64,000 nt of DNA. Source: Epiperipatus broadwayi (taxonomy: Eukaryota; Animalia; Onychophora). The notes under the pieces were generated by a model. It did not search any database. It saw only the letters and a list, made by a program, of their open reading frames with translations, and was not told the origin of the DNA. How positions within the stretch are numbered: position 1 is the stretch's first letter; each line of letters starts with the position of its first letter. The stretch is from the NCBI GenBank assembly GCA_028023455.1, contig JAQFVV010000005.1, positions 1,116,001-1,180,000 on the forward strand. The letters run 5' to 3'. Made by a program: the position numbers and the translations under genes. Shown here in pieces: positions 722 through 64,000 of this stretch.

Positions 722-1525
722 TGATATAAATTGGGGGATTCTGTAGTTAAATGGAAGAGTGTAGAAGTTATATATGTATAGCATATTTTTCATCACTTTC
801 TAAAAAGAGCTTGAAAACTATTTGAATTAGTGTAAATGGATTTACAAATAGGATCAGCTAACAAATGCTGCTTGTTAGTGGGAAAATCGAATTAAGCTCT
901 ATATAAGCTAATAAACTGGCTTTCTGCTGTCTGTTGCCAGATGTAATTTTGGTTTGCTTTTTCATTTGAAATATAATTGGACGTTGGTCTGATGATAAAC
1001 AAGGAAAAATTGCAGTTTCTAAGAAATCAATCTTCTTGTTCTGTCTGACCAACCTTATGCTGGTAAACATGGAACAAAATAATTAAAATGTATTGTGTGG
1101 GAAGTGGGGGGGGGGGGGACTTACATGAGTGAAAAAGTTTTTCATTTCTGCATCACCAATAGTTTATTTAAAGCTGTAAATCAATTTGTGTGTATGTGTC
1201 TATGCAAATGAATAAAGTAATTTCATTTATCTTCTTTCACAATCTGAAGGAAAAAAATGTTTATCAGCTCACATACACCCACACATTTATGAATATATTC
1301 GTTACACGCATATGTATACAGCGTATATATATATACGTATGACAAACATACTCAGATATATAAATCATTATATTGAAAATCTCTAATATGATATGAGCAC
1401 AGAAATGCCATTGTGAAATAAATTGAATGTTAAATAATAGATATTTAAATATTCTGAAGTTGATTACAAGTTAAAATCTGCTTTACTGTTTGACTCACTT
1501 GTAAACCTGTTTATATATATGTGTA

Positions 1526-1693
1526 GGCTGCAGAAAGGAGTTTGCTATTAACTGAAAGGAGACCCTTTGATTCCTCTTGGAGGCCTTAAAGGAACCGAGC
1601 AGGGCAAATTCCTAATGTCCACTCCATACGTTCTTGTCGTTGCAGCTGTTATTACTATGTGATTATTCATATAGTATACGAACATGGATGGGC
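1526..1693 (+). ncRNA. HDV-like self-cleaving ribozyme at the 5' end of the RTE
   Basis: P1 GGCTGCA(1526-32)/TGCAGCT(1641-47) with G1-U wobble; P2 TCCAT(1623-27)/ATGGA(1684-88), extended by GTCCA/TGGGC; P3 ACG/CGT; L3 TTCTTGT; G1648 for P1.1; P4 hairpin ~1653-1676; J4/2 CGAAC with putative catalytic C1679. Confidence 0.85.
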
Positions 1694-1852
1694 TGCTCAC
1701 CAACACGCATTAGCCAGCATGATGAGTTTATTGGCTTTTTACCTCTTGAGTTTAAGATCAAAAAACACCATGGTCTTTCCTCTCAGTGCCTGATAAGGCA
1801 GAATGAATGTTTGTGTAAATGATAAATATTTTTCCAATACATATATACAATT

Positions 1853-4805
1853 ATGACAGACAAAAATAAAGCATGGCCCTTATTCCCAGGAGGCAGTAAA
1901 GTCACCAACCAAGGCAGCGGTTGGTGGCCGAAGGCAGAGGGTGCTAAGAATCCCCTGATTGCGGACCCAGGCTGCCATTTGATGACGACTTTTTATATAA
2001 GTACTTACAACTGCAGATCACTTTCAAGTGAAGGAAGATTGCAAGAAATAGAAGAAGAACTATCTTATATTAAATGGGACATTATTGGACTTTGTGAAGT
2101 TAGAAGAAAAGGAGAAGAAACAATTGATTTAAAAAGTGGACATATACTCTATTATAAAGGCACACATATTGGAAATACAAGTGGAGTAGGATTCATTATA
2201 AATAAAAAGTGGAAAAACAATATTGTGGAGATTGATGGTGTATCGGACAGAGTGGCAAGATTAGTTATACAACTTAATAGCAGATACCAAATGCAGATAA
2301 TTCAGGTTTATGCCCCAACAAGTTCTCATAGTGATGAAGTAGTAGAAGATTTCTATATGGATGTACAAAAGGCTTTTGATCAGGGTAAACAACATTTTAA
2401 AATTGTTATGGGAGACTTTAATGCTAGAATTGGTAGACAAATGAAAGATGAAATTGCTGTAGATAATTTTGGTTATGGTAATAGAAATGAGAGAGGACAG
2501 ACTTGTGGAGTTTGCAGAAAAAGAAAAACTTTATATTATGAATTCATTTTTTGAGAAAAATGTTAAAAGGAAATGGACATGGAAGCATCCAAATGAAGGT
2601 ACAGCAGAATTGGATTATATTTTGACTAACAGAAAATACATATTTCAAGATTGTAATGTTCTTAATAAATTTAACACAGGAAGTGATCATTGATTAGTAA
2701 GGGATAAGTTACATGTTAATGTAAAACTAGAAAGACAAAAATTATTAAGAAAAACCATATTTACAGTTGATATTCCTAATCTTCAGAAACATTCTAATGA
2801 ATTTAAATTAGAACTTACAAATAGGTTTCAAGTGTTAGGAGATTTTGAACATGATACAGATTTGAATGAAATTAATATGAAAATAACTGATACACTTTTA
2901 AAAACTGCAACAAACATAGCTGGTAGAAAAAATCAGCAATTGACTAATAAAATTTCTACTGAGACTAGAGAATTTATGAAGAAAAGACGGAATATGAAGA
3001 TATACAAAAATGATGTATTAAAAAGAATTGAATATCTCGAATTTTGTAAAATGGTACGGAAAAGAGTTGAAAATGATATAAGAAAGTATAACTGAGAACT
3101 AGCAAGGAAAGCTGTAGAAGAGAATAAAAGTCTCAAGAATGTTAAACAACATTTTGGTATTTGTAGGAAATTTATATCTGCAATAAGAAAAAAAGATGGA
3201 ATTATTACTAAAAAGAGAGATGACATCATGAAATTGGTAGAAGATTTTTATCAAGAATTATATAGTAATAAAGAACAAGTACCTCCTATATCTATTACAT
3301 CTTCCAAATTGCCCAGAATTTTAAATGAAGAAGTGAGACATGCAATTAAATGTATGAAGAAAGGAAAGGCTCCAAGAAATGATGGAATTATAATTGATAT
3401 ATTAAAAGAAGCAGGTGAAGAAATAGAAACAATTTTAGCAAAGTTATATACCAAATGTCTAAATGATAAAGATGTACCGGAAGATTGGAAGAATGCAGTA
3501 ATAATATTAATATTTAAAAAAGGTGATAAAGAAGATATTAGAAATTACAGACCTATCAGCCTTTTATCAGTTTTATATAAAATTTTTACCAAGATAATTA
3601 CAACTCGTCTACAGAGAACTTTGGATTTCCACCAACCAAGAGAACCAGCTGGATTTAAAAGTGGTTTTAGTACAATAGATCATATCCAGGTATTGAGAGA
3701 AGTCATAGAAAGGACAAACGAATATGAGTTGTCATTATGTTTTGGATTTGTAGATTATGAAAAGGCATTCGATTCTATACACATTTCTTCAGTGATTAAA
3801 GCATTGGATCATCAAGGTATAGATCCAGGATATTGTCATATTTTAAAGAATATTTATAAAAATGCAACAGCAACAATTAGATTACATAATGATACTGGAA
3901 AAATCAACATTGAGAAAGGTGTAAGACAAGGTGATTCCATATCTCCAAAACTTTTTACAGCAGTGCTGCAAGAAGTATTTTGTGGATTAAAATGGGAAAC
4001 TAAAGGAGTGAAAGTAAATGGAGAGTATTTAAGTCATTTAGATTTCGCAGATGATGTAGTTGTTTTTGCAAATAATGCTTCAGAGCTGCAGGAAATGTTG
4101 CAGGAGTTAGCAGATGAAAGTAGAAAAGTAGGACTAAAGATAAATGTTAAAAAGACTAAAGTAATGTTTAATCGATTTGCTCAAAATATGAAAATAAAGA
4201 TTGATTATGAAGAATTAGAAGAAGTTAACAGTTACAAATACCTTGGTCAGATTATTAATACAGATGGAAACATAATAGAGGAAATTAATCATAGAATTAA
4301 ACTTGGTTGGAGTGCTTTTGGTAGAAATAACTTGATACTAAAAGGAAATATGCCTATGTGTTTGAAAAGGATGGTTTTTAACAAATGTGTTTTACCAGGT
4401 CTTACTTATGGATCTGAGACTTGGACACTTAATAGAAGAGCAATACAGAGACTTCAGACCACTCAAAGGAGTATGGAGAGATGTATGTTGGGAGTAACAA
4501 GAAGAGATCGAAAACGCAATATATGGGTAAGACAACAAACAGGTGTTACTGACCTTATTGAAAAAATTAAAAGATTGAAATGGAGTTGGGCTGGACATAT
4601 TGCTAGAAGAGATGATAATAGATGGACAATTGAAATTTTAAACTGGATTCCAAGAGATTGTAAAAGACCCAGAAAGAGGCCACATGTGAGATGGATGGAT
4701 TAAATAAGAAAATGTGCAGGGGTGTTGTGGAGAAGAGAAGCTAAAGATCGGAGAAGGATTAAACTTGGAGAGACCTTCATCCTGCAGTGGATTGATAATG
4801 GTTGA
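1853..4805 (+). pseudogene. RTE ORF (AP endonuclease + reverse transcriptase, ~980 aa), disrupted
   Basis: APE motifs (TYNCRSL, GLCEVRR, IQVYAPT, MGDFNA, SDH) and RT motifs (NYRPISLL, DYEKAFDS, GVRQGD, LDFADD, YKYLGQ). One frameshift near 2497 and stops at 2691, 3093 and 4701. The copy at ~15560 has GAA where this copy has the 4701 stop. The natural stop TGA at 4803 begins the tail. Confidence 0.95.
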
Positions 4806-6365
4806 TGATGATGATGATGATGATATGTGTAGACACATACAATATGTTTCATGTTAAAGATAACTGATGATTAATTCTGCCTGCAGCTCCATCTTGTAAT
4901 CAATGCATGTATTGTGTAGTAACATAAAAAAATAAAAAAATGCTAGCTTGTTTGGATCAAAAATATGTTACAGTGTGTTTTGTACTTAACTCATCATGGA
5001 ACAATTCAGTAACATTCAATTTTGTTTTAAATTTGGCAAAACTGTTACTGAAACATTTGAAATAATTTAAACTGTGTAAGGTAGTGAAGCCTTGAATCGC
5101 AAAAATGTTTTCAAATAGTTTGTAAGATGTTGTGATGATAGGAAGGAGCACTGAAGACAATTGGCAAAGGTATGAAACACACTGTCATATTTCAAGTTGT
5201 AACTCGTAATCCAGACATAAAAATGCCTTAAAATTTTTTCAGTGAATAACTAAATTATGTCATTACATAACACACGTTGGTTCAGTGATGGAACTGCAGA
5301 CAGCTTGGAGAGTAATTTTTTTACTCGGATATCTCAAGTATTTAATATTACATTCTTATTGAAGTTTTAAATATATTATATTACAATATGGCTGTATGCT
5401 GATAGTCGATTAATGTTAAAATTATAGATTTTAAAAATTATTTACGAGTCATTTTGTAAAATAATACGTTTATAACATCAAAAAAAAAAAGTAATATATT
5501 ATGCATGTATATGTGTTTATATATGGGTCCACATTAGCTTTTTATTAAAAATTATTAATAGAACTATTTAATTGTATTTTTTTTTTTAAGTATGCACAAC
5601 AAACCTATATATTAAAGGCATGAAAATGTAGAACTTGCTGCTGCATTTTAATGCAACAGTAGGTAGAATAATAGATTTTGAAATTAAAGGTTCCTGATTT
5701 TAGAGTCACCTTATTGCTAACCATTCAGTTAATTTTAAATATCAAATTTTATTTTTAACAGAAAATTTAAAATTGATTGATTGATGTTTTAATTCCTTCA
5801 AGTTGAGGTTTTTTTAAGCATATAGGAACTATATAATTTATTTATTTCATGTAGTCAGAACTTTGTTAATTAGGGTTAGAAACTGTGAAGTTTTCTGCCT
5901 GCAACATACAGTTTATTGCTAAAGAAGTCATATGACATTTGAGTCCTCTAATGAAAGATTTAAGTATTTATTAGTTTCATTCACTTAGTCTGAAGAAAGG
6001 TTTTTTAAAAATATATGTTAGTCAGTTAAGAAACAGTTATAGAACTTTTAGCTTCATGCCTGCTATTTTACCACTGCAGTACATTTGCACAATAATTATA
6101 TAATATCACGTTACTATGAAGTTATAATATTTGATTATCATGGGTGATAATTAGTTATTGGTTGCTACCTTTTACCAAAATTTTATATAGCGTCTTAAAA
6201 TTTAGAGCTTTATTATAAATTCTAATGACATTTTTGCGTCGTTAAAATAGCTGGGTTATTTTTGGAAATAGTTTCCAAGAGAAGACAGTTTAGTGAGAAA
6301 CTTATAGATATTGTAATAAAGTAAAAATATGAAAAACATAGACTTCCCAATTAAGCAAGTAATAT

Positions 6366-13404: not shown

Positions 13405-14390
13405 TTATCATCATCATTTTCAACCAATATCACTTTGGTTTTTCCAAATTAATTCATCTTCAATCTCTAGCATCTCTTCTTCACAACCACAGCACACTTC
13501 ATTATTTCATCCATCAATCTCACATGTGGTCTCTTTCTAGGTCTTTTTACAATTTCTTGGAATCCAGCTTAAGATTTCAACTGTTAATAAATTATCATTT
13601 CTTCTAGCAATAAGTCCAGCCCAATTCCACTTCAGTTTCTTAATTCTTTCAGTGATGTCAGTAATATCTGTTTGGTCTCTCATCCATGTATTTCCGTTTC
13701 GATCTCTTTTTGTTACTCCTAACATTCATCTCTCCATACTTCACTGAGTGATCTGTAGTTTGTATTGCTCTTCTGTTAAATATCCAAGTATCAGATCCAT
13801 AAATAAGAACTGGTATAACACATTTATTCAAAGCACCCTAACTAAATTAACTCAATGATTAATTTCATTCATTAGGTTACCAACTGTTAGTAATAATCTT
13901 ACCAAGGTCTTTGCAGTTGATAATTTCTTCTAACTCATTATTAGCAATCTTTATTTTCTTCATTTGAGAAAATCTATTTTAGTCTTTTTAACATTTTACC
14001 TTTAATCTTACTTTCTTATTGTCATCTGTTAAGTCTTGTAACAGTTGTTGAAGATCTAAAGCATTATTTGTAAAAGCAATTATGACATTTGCAAAATCTA
14101 GATGACTTAAATAATCTCCATTTACTCTTACTCCCTTTGCTTCCCATTTTATTCACAAAAAAACTGCCATAAAAAGTTTTGTAGATATGGAGTCACCCTG
14201 TCATACATCCTTCTCGATGTTAATCTTCCTAGTATCTTATGTGATCTAATTGTTGCTATTGTAATTTTATAAATATTCTTCAGAATATGACAATATTCTG
14301 GATCTATATTTTGATGATCCAGTGCTTTAATTACCGAAGAAATGCTTGTAGAATCAAATGCCTTTTCATAATCTTCAAATTCAAAGCATT
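13405..14390 (-). mobile_element. Degenerate RTE fragment (RT C-terminal half to tail)
   Basis: ORF 13537-13725 (MLGVTKRDRNGNTWMRDQT...LKWNWAG) matches the intact copy; an EKAFDS remnant lies near 14360; tcatcatcat tail at ~13405. Confidence 0.85.
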
Positions 14391-15483
14391 CCTCTGTTAT
14401 ATATACATATTTTTCATAACATATGCTGCAGTCTTAAAATAATATTTTGTAAATTTATGTAAAACTTTTTATATTTTTATTGCATTTGTATTTATTTAAT
14501 TTTTTTTTCAATTTTTATTTGTTGTTTTTGCTTTATATTTAAATGTATGTATATTAAATACTCTGGCTGAAGGCAGGTGGAGTGACAATTGCGTATTAAT
14601 ATATTAACTTTTATAGTATTATTTTATAATACATTCCTTAATGTAATTTAATCTCTTTAATTTTTGTTGTTTTGTTAACCGTTTGTGTTCAAATTGGGTA
14701 TAATTTCTTAACTTTTTTTGTTGTTAGTAGAACATAAGTTAATATTATATACCCTTATAAAAAACATACATTTAAAAATTCATTTATATGTAATATGAGT
14801 TTTACTCTACAAAGAGAAATTGATTTTACCTGTCTTCACATTTCCTAGGGAGAAGAGACAGCTGTCTGTTAATTTGTCAATATAATTTTTTTATTGTGCT
14901 TTTCAAATGAACATTTTAATGTCACCCCCACCCCCAGTTTTTTTAAATCTCGAAGACGGGCTGTCACAGGGTGACATTTATTAGTAATATTATGTCAGAG
15001 TTTTAGCAAGGGATAGTCATAAAATAATTGTCAGATCCTAAAGATGAGTCTGATATGACAGTTGTGGGATGTTTTTTTTTTTCCTTCATTTAAAATTCCT
15101 GTCAGTAAAACTTCAACTGAATATTAAAAAAATCAAAACACATCAGACAAATCACTAATGAATTTTTTTTAATAAACGATTTTCGTTTCAGTGAAGAAGT
15201 TTTGATTTTTTTTTTTTTAGATATTAGGTTAAACTATTTCCTTTTATATTCAGTTTTGCAAATTTTTTACTCACTAGTTCATCCTTTAAAAACTAGTCTT
15301 TTTAATTTAAATAAATAAAAACTCCTATCAGTTTTTGTATATTTTTTACAAAACAATCACAATTAGTTTTCTTAACATATATCACAATCATATTATAATA
15401 CCACTTAGATATCTTTTTTTTTTTTACTTTATTTAACATTATTGTACACACAATATATACATACATAATAATAATACATGGTA

Positions 15484-15675
15484 ATAGATGGACAATTGGA
15501 ATCTTAAACTGGATTCCAAGAGATTGTTAAGACTCAGAAAGAGACCACATATGAGATGGATGGATGAAATAAGAAAGTGTGCAGGGGTGATGTGGAGAAG
15601 AGAAGCTAAAGATCGGAGATGGATTGAACTTGGAGAGACCATCCTGCAGTGGATTGATAATGGTTGATGATGATG
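15484..15675 (+). mobile_element. 5'-truncated RTE 3' end
   Basis: High similarity to 4618-4815 and ends ...gtggattgataatggttgatgatgatg. Confidence 0.9.
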
Positions 15676-20959: not shown

Positions 20960-23890
20960 ATCATTTTAGCAAAATTGGAACTTCTAGGTCAATTTGTTTA
21001 CCCCATTATTTCAAAGTTTCTATTTATTTTTAATACCACTTTGCCCGGTCATTTGTTTTTTTTTATATTCAATATTTTAGATTTTAACTCAGCAATTTTT
21101 TTTTTTACTTTATCCATTCAATTAACATATGGTCTTCTAGATCTTTTACAATCTCTTGGAATCCAATTTAAGATTTCAGCTGAAAATATATTGACATTTC
21201 TCTTAACAATATGTCCTGCACTTGTCCATTTCGGTTATTTATTTCTTTCAATGATATGAATGGTAGCTATTTGGTCTCTGACTCAAATATTTTTTTTCAA
21301 GTTCATCTTTCCTCTATTTCATGGTGTGGTCTGAAGTATCTTAATTACTCTTCTGTTAATTGTCCAAAAGTCCACTGAACATTTCTTTAATCCTATGTTC
21401 TTATTATCATATGATAATTCTTACGCCATTTTCTGAAGCTCTGAGCATCATTTGCAAAAACATCTTCATTAGCAAAGTCTGTATGATTTAAATAATTGCC
21501 TTGTATTTTTATTTCCCTATCTTTCCATTTTAACCTACAAAATACTTGTAAAACTGTTGTGAAAAGTTTTGGATATATGGAAATATCTGTTTTACACATT
21601 TATGAGTTTTAATCTTGGTTTACCATGTAATCTAATCACTGCTATTGACTTTTGATGAGTATTCTTTAGAATATAGCAATATCCTGGGTCTGTATCCTGA
21701 TGGTACAAAGTTTTAATCACTATAGAAGTTATTAGAGAATTAAATTTTTTACTATAATATATAAATCCAATGTATCTTCATGGTTGAAAGCTTTAATCAC
21801 TGTAGAAGTTGTTTATAGAATCAAGTGTTTATTTGTAATATGCAAATCCAAAGCTTCATAGTAACTCATATTCTTTTATTCTTTCTACAACTTCTTTCAA
21901 TACTTGGATATAATCTACTGTGCTAAAACCATTTTTAAATACAGCTTGTTGTTTTGGTTGGTTTGAATTCAAAGTTTGTTATAAAAGAGTTGATATTATC
22001 TTGGTAAAGATTTTATATAGAATTGATAGGTCTGTAATTTCTAATATCTTCTTTACTGCTTTCTTAAATATCATTATTACTACTGCCTTCATCCAACTAT
22101 CTGGTACATCTTTATTATTTAAACATTAAACATTTGGATTTGCTAGCACTTTTCTATCTCTTTACATGTTTAATTCTATAAACATCAATAATAATTCCTT
22201 TTATTTCATGGAGTTTTTCCTTTCTTTAGAGATGTAATTGCATGTCTCATCTCTTCATTTAAAATAGTTTTCAATTCAGAAGATATATTAATTTTGTTTT
22301 TTTATTATATTATTTTTTATAGAATTCTTTCATACATTTCATGATGTCATTTCTTTTTTTAGTAATAGTTTTATCTTTTCTTCCAATACCAAAATATTAT
22401 TTTAATTCTTTTCTCTTCTATAGCTTTCCTCGCCAGTTCACAATTATATTTTCTTATATTGATTATTAACTGTTTTTCATACCATAATCAATTCTTCACA
22501 CTGGATCATTTTTAAATATTTTCATATTTCTTTTTTTTTCATACATTCTTTTGTTTTAGTTGAAAATTTACTGATTAATTGCTGCTTTTTTGTATTGGTT
22601 ATCTTTGTTACAATAGTTAGTAGAATATTAGTTATCTTATTGATCTCCTTCATTGGAATTTTTCTGATGGTAAGGAATATCCAACTATTAATAGTTCTTT
22701 TTTAATAGTCTTCATCCTTCTTGTTTTATAATGATATTTTATATCTCACTAATTGATGATCATTTCCTATGTCGAATCTGTTAGGAACATTACTATCCTA
22801 AAATACTACACATATTTCCTAATTAGTCAAAGTGTAATCCAATTTTACTATGCCTTTACTTGGATGTTTCCATGTCCATTTCTGTTTAGTATTTTTCTCC
22901 AAAAAAATAATTCATAATATACAGGATTTTTTCCCCTGAAAATTCCACAATCCTGTGACCTCTCTTCTACCATTATAATAAGGCAAATTTATTTACAATA
23001 CTTTTATTTTTCAATTATTTTTCAATTCCAGCATTAAAGTCTCTCATGATAATTTTAAAAGTTTGTTTGGGGTGATCAAAAGTATTTTGTAGATCAATAT
23101 AAAGTTCTATTTCCTCAACAAAGTGAGAACTTCTTGGCATATAAATTGAATTATCTGCATTTGGTATTTTTCATTAAGTTGAATAACTAATCTTGCTATT
23201 CTGATCAATCAATCTCATCAATTTTATTTATTATGAAACATAAATCGTGTATGCCCTCAATTGTTGTGCCTTTATAGTAAAATACCTATTCTCTTTGTAA
23301 ATCAATTGTCTTTTTATCTTTTTTCTTCTAACTTCACTACGTTCAAAAACATTCCATTTAATATTAGACAGTTCAAAATCATGTGTGATCGGTAATTGTA
23401 AGTAGCTAAATAAAAGATTTCATCCAATGTCAGCCTGAAACTGCAATCAAGGGATTTTTAGCACCTACCCCCTTCAACTGGTAAGTGCTGCCATTGCTAG
23501 TAACTTTATAGCCTCCTTGGGAATAAAGGCCATAATTTAGCTTTGTCTGTTATGATCGTAAATATCTAATAAAAATTATATATATAAAAATCTTACTACA
23601 TTCATCCTGCCTTCAAAAAAATGCAATTCCATTTTTCAGTTTAGCACTTTCAGGCAATTTAGAATAAACATGGGATTTCTTGGTCTTAAATTCACTATGC
23701 TGGCTGATGCATATTGTTGAGTAGCCTATTTATGTTATGTTTACTACATGAATAATCATATAATAATAAGTTGCAGTGCCTAGAAAGTATGGAATGGATA
23801 TTAAGAAATTTACCATGCTCAGTATCTTTAAGGCTACAAAGAGGAACAAAGGGTCTCCTTTCATTTAACGGCCAACTTTTTTCAGCAGTG
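20960..23890 (-). mobile_element. Old, degenerate full-length copy of the same RTE family
   Basis: The reverse complement of 23640-23890 aligns to the 5'UTR at 1526-1740 (tgaaaggagaccctttg, ccttaaag), ~23430-23470 to ~1940-1975, and RT remnants occur at 21393-21599. End coordinates are approximate. Confidence 0.8.
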
Positions 23891-29400: not shown

Positions 29401-29894
29401 GTCTATCTGCAGTATTTATTTTCATTCATTCAATAGCAGAGTTATGATATAGGACTTCGCGTTTTTCAGCATTCTGGTTTTCTCTTTGATGGGATCAGTT
29501 TTTTCATCATCGTCATCATTGCTTTTTTTAATATTTATTATTAATCAAACAATTAATAATATTTAATTAGAAGAAATGTTTGTTAGACTGAACATGTTAT
29601 CAGACCTTATTTATATTAAAAAGATGATCTCTAAGACATCCTGAAGAAATGCATTATTGATTGCTTTCATTGGGAAGATATGGCTGAGAATTATAATGGA
29701 GAGTGCAATAAAGGCAGGACAGTGATAAAAGTAAAATTCTATGCAGATAAATTTAAGAGGTAGCATACAAGATATCAAACTAGATGATTAATTAAAAGAC
29801 CAGAACATGATGTATATGAATATACATTATTGATTAATATAGGCCCATAGACATGTTTTACCTATTCGTATTTATGAATATGAGATTTGGATAC

Positions 29895-30275
29895 TTGACA
29901 GAAGAGCAATACAGTGACTTCAGATCAAGGAATGAAGTATGGATAGATTTATGTGGGAGAAACAAAAAGGGATCCAAAGCAAACTATTTGAATGAGGAAA
30001 CAAATAGATATCATTAATATCATTGAAAGAATTAAGAGACTGAAATGGAACTGAGCTGAGTATATTGTATGAAGAGTTAATAATAGGTGAATAAGTGAAG
30101 TCTTAAACTGAATCTAGAGTATTGCAAGACTTAGAAGATGATCACATGTAAGATGTGTATGTTGGTATGATATGGATAGGGAAATTGCATCAGAGAAACA
30201 AATTAAACTTGGAATGATCTTTATCCTATTATGTGTTTGTTGATATTGGTTGAAAGTGTTGATGATGAAGATGAC
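29895..30275 (+). mobile_element. Degenerate RTE 3' fragment
   Basis: gacagaagagcaatacagtgacttcagatc ... gagactgaaatggaactg ... gatgatgaagatga tail. Confidence 0.75.
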
Positions 30276-58943: not shown

Positions 58944-59221
58944 TATAATAAAATATTTTAGTTTTTTTTTCTTGGGATCAGCATTTTTCTGTCATTGATT
59001 ATACTATAGATAACGATATCATAGTTTTTTTTGTTTAAGGTAATAATAAACTATAATTTAAAAGATTTTCCTGTGCAAAATTATATTCTATTAAAAGATT
59101 AATATATTGTTATTTATAACCCCAAGGTAGGTGTTAGGTAGTCAAAATATAACAAAAAATATTGGCTAATATTATTAGAATATATATTTAGGAATTTCGA
59201 AGATTTTAATATATATATATA

Positions 59222-60155
59222 TTCCCAAAACTTTTTACAGCAGTGCTGTAAGAAGCATTTTGTGTATTAAAATGGAAGCTAAAGGAATAAAAGTAAGTAA
59301 ATGGGGATTATTTAAGTCATTTAGATTTTACAGATGATGTAGTTGTTTTTGCGAATAATGCTTCAGGGAGTGTTGCAAGAGTTATCAAATGAAAGTAGGA
59401 CTAAGAATAAATGTTAAAAAGACTAAAGTAATGTTCAATAGGTTTTCTCAAAAGATGAAAATAAAGTTTAATAATGATGAGTTAGAAGTTAACAACTACA
59501 AATATCTTGGTCTGATTATTATTACAGCTGGAAACATAATCGATGAAATAATCATAGAATTAAAGTTGGTTGGAGTGCTTTTGATAAAAATAACTTAACA
59601 TTAAAAGGAAATGTCTATGTAAAAAAAAAAAAAAAGATTCAATCATATATCACATGACCTAGTTTTTAAGCTTGTAAAAAAAAATAAAATAAAGACCTCT
59701 GCTAATTGCTCTATCAAGCTTTATTGATAAATGCCAACAAAGCATTTAAAAATCTCTATCTAGAAACCACTCCCCAACCTGTTTGAAAAGGAAGATTTTT
59801 AATAAATGTGTTTTACCAGTTCTTACTCCTGGATCTGGCCTTGGATGCTTAACAGGAGAGCAATACAGAGACTTTAGATCATTCAAAGAAGTATGAAGAG
59901 ATGATACTGACATCATTGAAAGGATTAAGAGATTGAGTTGGGATGGATATATTGCTAGAAGAGATGATAATAGACAGACAGTTGAAATCTCAAATGGGAT
60001 TCCAAGAGGTTGTAAAAGACCTAGAAAGAGACCACATGTGATGGATGGATGAAATAAGGAAGTGTGTGGGGTAAGGCTAGAGATCAGAGATGATTGAACT
60101 TAAAGATCTTCGTCCTGCAGTGGATTGGTAATAGTTGAAAATAATGATGATAATA
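59222..60155 (+). mobile_element. 5'-truncated, internally rearranged RTE copy
   Basis: Starts at PKLFTAVL coding sequence; ORF 59389 (KVGLRINVKKTKVMFN); unrelated insert at ~59620-59790; gataatgatgata tail. Confidence 0.85.
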
Positions 60156-60834: not shown

Positions 60835-61070
60835 TCATTCCAACAAACTTTTTTATTTATCCAGTTTGTGTGGTCTTTTTCTAGATTTTTATAATCTCTT
60901 AGGATCCTGACTAGGATTTCAATATCCATCTTGTTTTGTTATTATTTCTAGCTATTTATCTAACATAACTCCTTATTCTTTCAATTATGTCAGTGATATC
61001 TGCTTGAGTTTTCATTCATGCACTTATATTTAGATTTTTTCTTGTTACTCTGAATATTCATACTCATTGT
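60835..61070 (-). mobile_element. Degenerate RTE 3' fragment
   Basis: gtggtctttttctagatttttataatctcttaggatcc matches the reverse complement of the RTE 3' region. Confidence 0.6.
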
Positions 61071-63324: not shown

Positions 63325-63492
63325 GGCTGCAGAAAGGAGTTTGCTATTAACTGAAAGGAGACCCTTTGATTCCTCTTGGAGGCCTTAAAGGAACCGAGCA
63401 GGGCAAATTCCTAATGTCCACTCCATACGTTCTTGTCGTTGCAGCTGTTATTACTATATGTTTATTCATATAGTATACGAACATGGATGGGC
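63325..63492 (+). ncRNA. HDV-like ribozyme, second copy
   Basis: Same P1/P2/P3/L3/J4-2; putative catalytic C63478; P4 is TACTATATG/CATATAGTA. Confidence 0.85.
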
Positions 63493-63646
63493 TGCTCACC
63501 AACACGCATTAGCCAGCGTGGTGAGTTTATTGGCTTTTTACCTCTGAGTTTAAGATCAAGAAACACGATGGTCTTTCTTCTCAGTGCCTGATAAGGCAGA
63601 ATGAATGTTTGTGTAAATGATAAAGATTTTTCCCAATTATACAATT

Positions 63647-64000
63647 ATGACAGACAAAAATAAAGCATGGCCCTTAATCCCAGGAGGCTGTAAAGTCACC
63701 AACCAAGGCAGCGGTTGGTGGCCGAAGGCGGAGGGTGCTAAGAATATCCTGGAGGTGGACCCAGGCTGCCATTTGATGACGACTTTTTATTTAGGTACTT
63801 ACAACTGCAGATCACTTTCAAGTGAAGGAAGATTGCAAGAATTAGAAGAAGAACTCTCTTATATTAAATGGGATATTATTGGACTTTGTGAAGTTAGAAG
63901 AAAAGGTGAAGAGACAATTGATTTAAAAAGTGGACATATGCTCTATTATAAAGGCACAAATATTGGAAATACAAGTGGAGTAGGATTCATTATAAATAAA
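63647..64000 (+). CDS. RTE ORF N-terminus (APE domain), open to the window edge
   Basis: 118 uninterrupted codons, MTDKNKAWPLIPGG...TYNCRSL...GLCEVRR...SGVGFIINK. Confidence 0.85.
   Translation, partial: MTDKNKAWPLIPGGCKVTNQGSGWWPKAEGAKNILEVDPGCHLMTTFYLGTYNCRSLSSEGRLQELEEELSYIKWDIIGLCEVRRKGEETIDLKSGHMLYYKGTNIGNTSGVGFIINK

Follow-up and report, generated by a model that had tools for sequence, protein, structure and literature searches.

The human CPEB3 and HDV ribozymes share the same double-pseudoknot topology, with a G1.U pair at the cleavage site. They are compact, since their J1/2 spans a few nucleotides and P1.2 is missing, and they are not known as parts of retrotransposons. The RTE elements are retrotransposons reported to be without a promoter of their own, and the Agam-2 ribozyme was reportedly linked to an RTE by Ruminski in 2011. 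HDV-like ribozymes are by now established at the 5' ends of RTE, R2, R4, and L1Tc elements (PMC3774820; PMC6765202, citing Ruminski et al., 2011), which agrees with the first-pass annotation of the present locus, where those at the 5' ends of RTE, R2, and L1Tc were treated as a known class. A known HDV-like ribozyme with a structured side domain is Agam-2-1 from mosquito, in which a J1/2 domain called P1.2, together with a P2 extended from the usual ~7 bp to 12 bp, makes cleavage approximately 1000-fold faster, to a degree set by the stability of P1.2; P1.2 with its short linkers and the extended P2 draw P1 and P2 together (PMC4908430). In R2 elements, J1/2 is very large (216-498 nt in silkmoths), the spacing from P1 to P1' ranges from 23 to >700 nt, and a part of the silkmoth J1/2 loop is required for cleavage for reasons that are unknown (PMC3774820).

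The whole stretch of DNA analysed here, 64,000 nucleotides long and referred to as the window, contains an RTE-type non-LTR retrotransposon of 3299 bp at 1526-4824 (+) (Table 1). Its size, its endonuclease and reverse-transcriptase domains, its tail, its target-site duplication, and its nearest proteins would place it in the RTE clade, whose members measure about 3.2-3.3 kb, encode an AP-endonuclease and then a reverse transcriptase in one frame, and have a very short 3' UTR closed by a short tandem repeat. The nearest named proteins to its endonuclease are the RTE-derived 'craniofacial development protein 2-like' proteins, and a close endonuclease relative was not found in the protein collection, where the best were 57-62% identical. 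This copy is dead because its coding region is broken: the translations shift frame near 2500 and run into stops at 2552, 2691, and 3093. The locus is read, with high confidence, as a dead copy of a very abundant RTE whose first 168 nt encode an HDV-like self-cleaving ribozyme, for which we infer catalysis. The window is dense in RTE debris; other fragments of the same or related families lie at 13437-14389 (-), 15478-15675 (+), 21100-23888 (-), 29854-30274 (+), 59219-60154 (+), and 60869-61061 (-), mostly 5'-truncated and 65-92% identical.

Table 1. Features of the RTE element, its ribozyme, its copies in the window, and related loci (positions are those of the window unless a locus is named).
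Feature	Position	Strand	Description
Target-site duplication, 5' copy	1518-1525	+	ATGTGTA; G1526 likewise recurs after the tail
P1, 5' strand	1526-1532	+	GGCTGCA; predicted cleavage 5' of G1526, the element's first base
J1/2	1533-1616	+	84 nt: 3-nt linker, rod-like hairpin 1536-1613 (78 nt), 3-nt linker
P2, 5' strand	1617-1627	+	
P3	1628-1630 with 1638-1640	+	ACG/CGT, 3 bp
L3	1631-1637	+	TTCTTGT, 7 nt
P1, 3' strand	1641-1647	+	TGCAGCT; followed by GTT (to 1650)
P4 hairpin	1653-1662 with 1667-1676	+	10 bp, 4-nt loop, RNAfold -10.8 kcal/mol
J4/2	1679-1683	+	CGAAC; presumed catalytic C1679
P2, 3' strand (ribozyme end)	1684-1693	+	
Conserved hairpin	1696-1726	+	CTCACC ... GATGAG; adjoins the ribozyme 3' end
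Endonuclease part of RTE frame	1853-2554	+	233 aa, stop-terminated; Pfam Exo_endo_phos, E 5e-08
Reverse-transcriptase part	3228-4703	+	491 aa; Pfam RVT_1, E 2e-36
(GAT)n tail	4803-4824	+	Element 3' end
Target-site duplication, 3' copy	4825-4832	+	Same letters as the 5' copy, directly after the (GAT)n tail
Second copy of the same RTE family	63325-64000	+	95% identical, different flank, ribozyme complete, cut off by the window end
Old RTE copy	23888-21100	-	70% identical, decayed
Lineage B	L013, L005, L006		5' UTR ~75% identical to the window
Lineage C	L015		Ribozyme 470 nt before the matched endonuclease residue, versus 471 nt in the window
Lineage D	L076		
Lineage E	L031 179-283		44-nt J1/2, without P4
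Compact relative	L069 62-146		J1/2 of 0 nt, 8-nt L3, 2-bp P1.1, J4/2 CUAAAA
Relative	L008 1-70		Cut by contig start; J4/2 CUAAG as in Agam-2-1

The region 1526-1693 holds the full HDV-like nested double pseudoknot, in the strand order P1, P2, P3, L3, P3', P1', P4, J4/2, and P2'; the first-pass annotation had claimed all of these elements in the correct order, and every one of them was recovered. An HDV-like ribozyme is expected to have a P1 of 6-7 bp that begins at the cleavage site with G1 opposite U or C, a 3-bp P3 around an L3 of 7-8 nt that forms P1.1 with bases following P1', and a catalytic cytosine that opens J4/2 ahead of the P2 3' strand. P1 has 7 bp here and includes the claimed wobble at its first pair (G1526.U1647), with -10.1 kcal/mol. 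P2 was likewise confirmed as a helix and found to be longer than it had been drawn, being composed of 10 bp with C1622 bulged (-11.0 kcal/mol in a duplex fold). G1648 is able to pair with C1633 of L3, which gives a P1.1 of a single Watson-Crick G-C pair. In the second copy of the family, P4 keeps 9 bp and its loop differs.

The frequency of such an arrangement was estimated with a descriptor that demands P3 of 3 bp, L3 matching U.C..G., P1' of 7 nt with a terminal U and a G next to it, CGAA, 5 bp or more in P2, and 7 bp in P1 beginning with G1.U. On both strands of the 64-kb window it returned only 1526 and 63325, both of which are RTE 5' ends. As controls served 150 random windows of 64 kb that matched it in dinucleotide composition. 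The P3/L3/P1' core alone was found 1.55 times per random window and the core with J4/2 and P2, without P1, 0.007 times (150 windows each), while the full descriptor had 0 matches in the 150; the full motif is expected approximately 1e-4 times per window, before demanding that P1 start at the element's first base, a property that the descriptor did not use. A mere chance likeness of an AT-rich 5' UTR to the HDV drawing might still be argued from the fact that the descriptor was composed after the candidate had been seen and that Rfam offers no match. The margin is large, however, and the fold is found again, with compensatory changes, in lineages independent of one another; the random-window controls, the lineage covariation, and the J1/2 shuffles described below refute this explanation, which retains a negligible probability.

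The Rfam HDV-type models gave no match in the whole window at the gathering score or in 1400-1800 at E<=10, and none of them (HDV_ribozyme, CPEB3, drz-agam, and others) matches five related loci either. Since the compact relatives escape the models too, these misses are uninformative and are a limit of the models, not evidence against the ribozyme.

The 5' boundary was examined with Logan contigs from four runs placed on 1300-2100, which show the DNA boundary of the family and not RNA ends or cleavage; assembled contigs also tend to break at repeat boundaries anyway. The great abundance of the family is apparent from the contig depth, which rises approximately thousand-fold between 1516 and 1542, and from the 62,456 contig pieces placed there from the DNA run. 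Matching contigs stop on the left most often at 1526, with 365 contigs in the DNA run X1, and the same position ranks first in runs X11, X20, and X17 from three other organisms, followed by 1527-1529. The claim that the predicted cleavage site is the element boundary beside the target-site duplication therefore holds, 1526 being modal family-wide, with an ambiguity of one base: the duplicated target is ATGTGTA, or ATGTGTAG with G1526 counted in.

The frequent family variants in the ribozyme region are CpG transitions, located at 1596/7, 1629, 1639, 1679/80, and 1706 with similar frequencies. The presumed catalytic C1679 is itself in a CpG and is replaced by T in about a third of the family depth, as at the other CpGs. 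C>T or G>A at CpG constitutes nearly all of the frequent family differences (1596-1706), each at ~30-40% of depth, a pattern read as the mark left on dead copies by a host genome with CpG methylation. The variation of the ribozyme within the family is, on the same kind of evidence, interpreted as neutral decay of dead copies. The majority form in organism J carries C1605>T, which changes a G-C pair of the J1/2 stem to G.U. Copies of the family were rejected as a test of covariation, their variants being plain CpG decay with no covariation signal, and the 70%-identical copy at 23888 (-) was set aside as simply decayed.

A metagenome scan with alignment of relatives returned 80 RTE loci. HDV-like ribozymes, either homologous or analogous, are located upstream of the endonuclease on the coding strand in L013, L005, and L006, in L015, in L076, in L031, in L069, and in L008. 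Among the remaining candidates, L001 has the downstream hairpin with a decayed-looking ribozyme core, and L002 was too short to use. The core was compared among four to five independent lineages aligned by hand. G1.U is retained in lineages A, C, D, and E. The P1 positions 2-7 change on both sides yet stay paired among lineages, with the exception of an A.C at position 2 in L076; all five proximal pairs of P2 change on both sides and stay paired (L015, L076, and L031); and the third pair of P3 is G-C in the window and C-G in L015, L076, and L031. The first-pass annotation had made covariation in P1-P3 across copies a test of the structure: it was observed across lineages (P1 positions 2-7, P2 pairs 1-5, and P3 pair 3) and not across copies of the family.

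The single-stranded parts are conserved in letters. L3 reads UUC(A/U)(C/U)GU in all lineages, where position 5 is U in the window and C in every relative and in Agam-2-1. The GUU after P1' is invariant in 5/5 lineages, and ACGAAC, which comprises J4/2 with the presumed catalytic C, is identical in lineages A-D. In the relatives, the P4 sequence is unrelated to that of the window and still forms a hairpin, except in L031, which has none. Because the topology, the chance controls, the family-wide boundary, and the covariation across four to five lineages point the same way, it is very probable that this RTE begins, exactly at its 5' end, with a genuine HDV-like ribozyme fold that selection has conserved in the lineage.

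Lineage B differs at the very start of the ribozyme, where the strand collinear with P1 pairs at 5/7 positions only, if P1 is not taken to be interrupted by an insert of 38 nt. In these elements (L013 1328-1372; L005 218-262), the sequence begins with GG, followed by the 38-nt insert and then GCCCC, and GG and GCCCC together pair perfectly with the P1' strand GGGGCCU. The insert folds into two hairpins (-16.9 kcal/mol, z -3.1) that represent a tandem duplication of ~19 nt, and it is common to two copies with different flanks. In lineage B, a structured insert thus seems to interrupt P1 at a distance of two bases from the cleavage site. An alternative P1, made of AGGCTTC in stem a with GGGGCCT, was rejected, since this pairing is absent in other lineages and would destroy P1.2. 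In L076, the first 98 bases are an exact inverted copy of 585-682, with the junction <=2 nt from the predicted cleavage site G97; this inverted repeat could be a fold-back artefact at an RNA/cDNA end or an assembly chimera.

The sequence directly 3' of the ribozyme is also conserved and constitutes a further hairpin. The majority of the family has G at 1719 and 1722, which gives 6 bp (CTCACC/GGTGAG); both changes are private to the window copy. The hairpin is present in the relatives L015 (1577-1612), L001 (446-477), and L013 (about 1534-1570). Its stem covaries, being AGCTGAC/GTCAGCT in L015 and TCTGCCA/TGGCAGA in L001, and its loop is conserved as AACACGCA ... CCAGCG. Because the conserved sequence extends 3' into this hairpin, the UTR would have functions besides cleavage. 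The same observation can be turned into a different explanation of the whole region, in which the conserved HDV-type fold no longer cuts, or cuts too slowly, the end at G1526 is the start site of an internal promoter, and the UTR serves only translation or protein binding. The U at L3 position 5, where all relatives and Agam-2-1 have C, and the P1.1 of a single G-C pair are compatible with a ribozyme that has lost its activity. Against this, a family with this L3 has multiplied until its contig pieces number in the tens of thousands, and its 5' boundary lies sharply and exactly at the P1 base; P1 covaries between lineages, which is relevant only if P1 forms, and four lineages share an unchanged ACGAAC with its presumed catalytic C. 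Promoters of their own are, moreover, reported to be absent from RTEs (PMC6765202). A non-cutting fold is accordingly considered improbable, and efficient cleavage by the family's own L3 variant is likely, if somewhat less so than the fold itself.

In the preferred reading of a cleaving ribozyme, the RTE, having no promoter of its own, would be transcribed within longer host transcripts, and its 5' UTR would fold into the nested double pseudoknot. C1679 in J4/2, together with the core made of L3 and P1.1, would then catalyse cleavage of the bond 5' of G1526. The RNA of the element would start at its own first base, and every new copy would begin there. The P1.2 rod on its 3-nt linkers and the 10-bp P2 may hold the far ends of P1 and P2 together, from which faster folding into the active state would follow.

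The J1/2 domain was described by the first-pass annotation as ~85 nt long and folding by itself; it comprises 84 nt and folds exactly into the three helices that were named. The predicted fold has an MFE of -29.5 kcal/mol, accounts for 77% of the ensemble, and has a z of -3.2. RNAalifold on lineages A, B, and D gives 25 J1/2 pairs, 10 of which are changed on both sides. When the pairs are counted, 91% of cells are paired, compared with 28-50% in controls with slid partners, and none of 500 shuffles equalled this on any of the measures. L013, L076, and L015, folded independently as single sequences, give the same plan, which consists of a closing stem, a 5' bulge, a short covarying helix, two small internal loops with a GG:CC step between them, and a variable hairpin. 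The short helix is found as CTG/CAG, CTGG/CCGG, CAAG/CTTG, and CAGG/CCTG. The internal-loop letters GGAGAC ... (A)ACCGA are kept in four lineages despite the changed helices, and the endonucleases of the lineages sharing these letters are 31-57% identical. P2 is extended in the relatives as well, having 11 bp in L015 and 8 bp in L076, compared with 10 bp and one bulge here.

The J1/2 insert is best read as an activating domain of the P1.2 type, a role that we infer from its anatomy. A clamp in which short linkers and an extended P2 pinch P1 and P2 together would fit this anatomy better than a function in translation or in binding of the reverse transcriptase, as had initially been considered. 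Because L069, L031, and L008 carry far more compact HDV-like ribozymes, the peripheral J1/2 domain is judged to be lineage-specific within RTEs.

A competing view holds that the main task of J1/2 is to bind, in a sequence-specific way, either the protein encoded by the element or the translation machinery that would act on the uncapped, cleaved RNA, and that it is more than a clamp. It draws on the helices, which have diverged with compensatory changes around loop letters (GGAGAC and ACCGA about GG:CC) that were kept, on HDV-like ribozymes of other non-LTR elements that are reported to promote translation (PMC6765202), and on the silkmoth R2 element, where part of the J1/2 loop is needed for cleavage (PMC3774820). 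However, L031 and L069 do with a J1/2 of 44 nt and 0 nt, and the domain is therefore not essential to RTE ribozymes generally. The clamp, in addition, already accounts for the stable hairpin, the short linkers, and the long P2 (PMC4908430), and the two roles are not exclusive. A platform as the main role is thus regarded as possible and rather doubtful. It may similarly be suggested, tentatively, that P1.2 exceeds a generic clamp through its conserved double internal loop (GG-AGAC on the 5' side and AA-CC-GA on the 3' side), whose letters persist although every surrounding helix has changed in sequence. If true, the loop would make a defined tertiary contact or be bound by the ribosome or the protein of the element, and it would link 5' processing to translation or template recognition.

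A ribozyme of this kind would explain how tens of thousands of RTE copies share a start base without a promoter. As a natural case with a large peripheral domain, it is also a well-supported addition to the HDV-like ribozymes. Annotators can use it to recognise full-length RTE 5' ends sharply, and curated RNA models currently miss it. The conserved loop in J1/2 is a concrete, mutable target with which a function of such domains beyond clamping P1 and P2 could be examined. The kind of ribozyme found in the window, including a large side domain in J1/2, is already described. No description was found for the conserved P1.2 loop, the hairpin 3' of the ribozyme, or the split P1 of lineage B, which are possibly new; as far as the ribozyme goes beyond the available literature, it possibly does so only in the conserved loop inside the J1/2 domain.

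Compared with Agam-2-1, the window ribozyme is likewise a large HDV-like ribozyme that would cut at the element's own first base, with a short linker, a structured J1/2 hairpin (P1.2), a second short linker, and an extended P2 (12 bp there and 10 here), and P3 is ACG/CGU in both. The two differ in P1.2: that of the window, at 78 nt, is about twice as long as the ~35 nt of Agam-2-1, conserved internal loops interrupt it, and the two sequences are unrelated. L3 reads UUCUUGU here and UCCACGU there, the first P1 pair is G.U instead of G-C, and P1.1 has one G-C pair instead of two. J4/2 is CGAAC here and CUAAG there, P4 has 24 nt here and is very long there, and the Rfam drz-agam model does not match the window ribozyme.

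The CPEB3 and HDV ribozymes have a 7-nt L3 starting with UUC with G at position 6 and a C followed by GAA in J4/2, as in the window ribozyme, and differ from it at L3 position 5, which is C in them and U here. The L3 of L013 and L015, UUCACGU, is the same as that of CPEB3.

R2 elements, also of the non-LTR type, likewise carry an HDV-like ribozyme at the 5' end, where it frees them from a co-transcript, and P3, L3, and P1.1 are conserved in them with a covarying P1 (PMC3774820). They belong to another clade, however, are site-specific in 28S rDNA, and are often cut upstream in 28S sequence. The J1/2 loops of R2 share little sequence between species, whereas both the fold and the loop letters of the J1/2 domain in the window RTE are kept across lineages.
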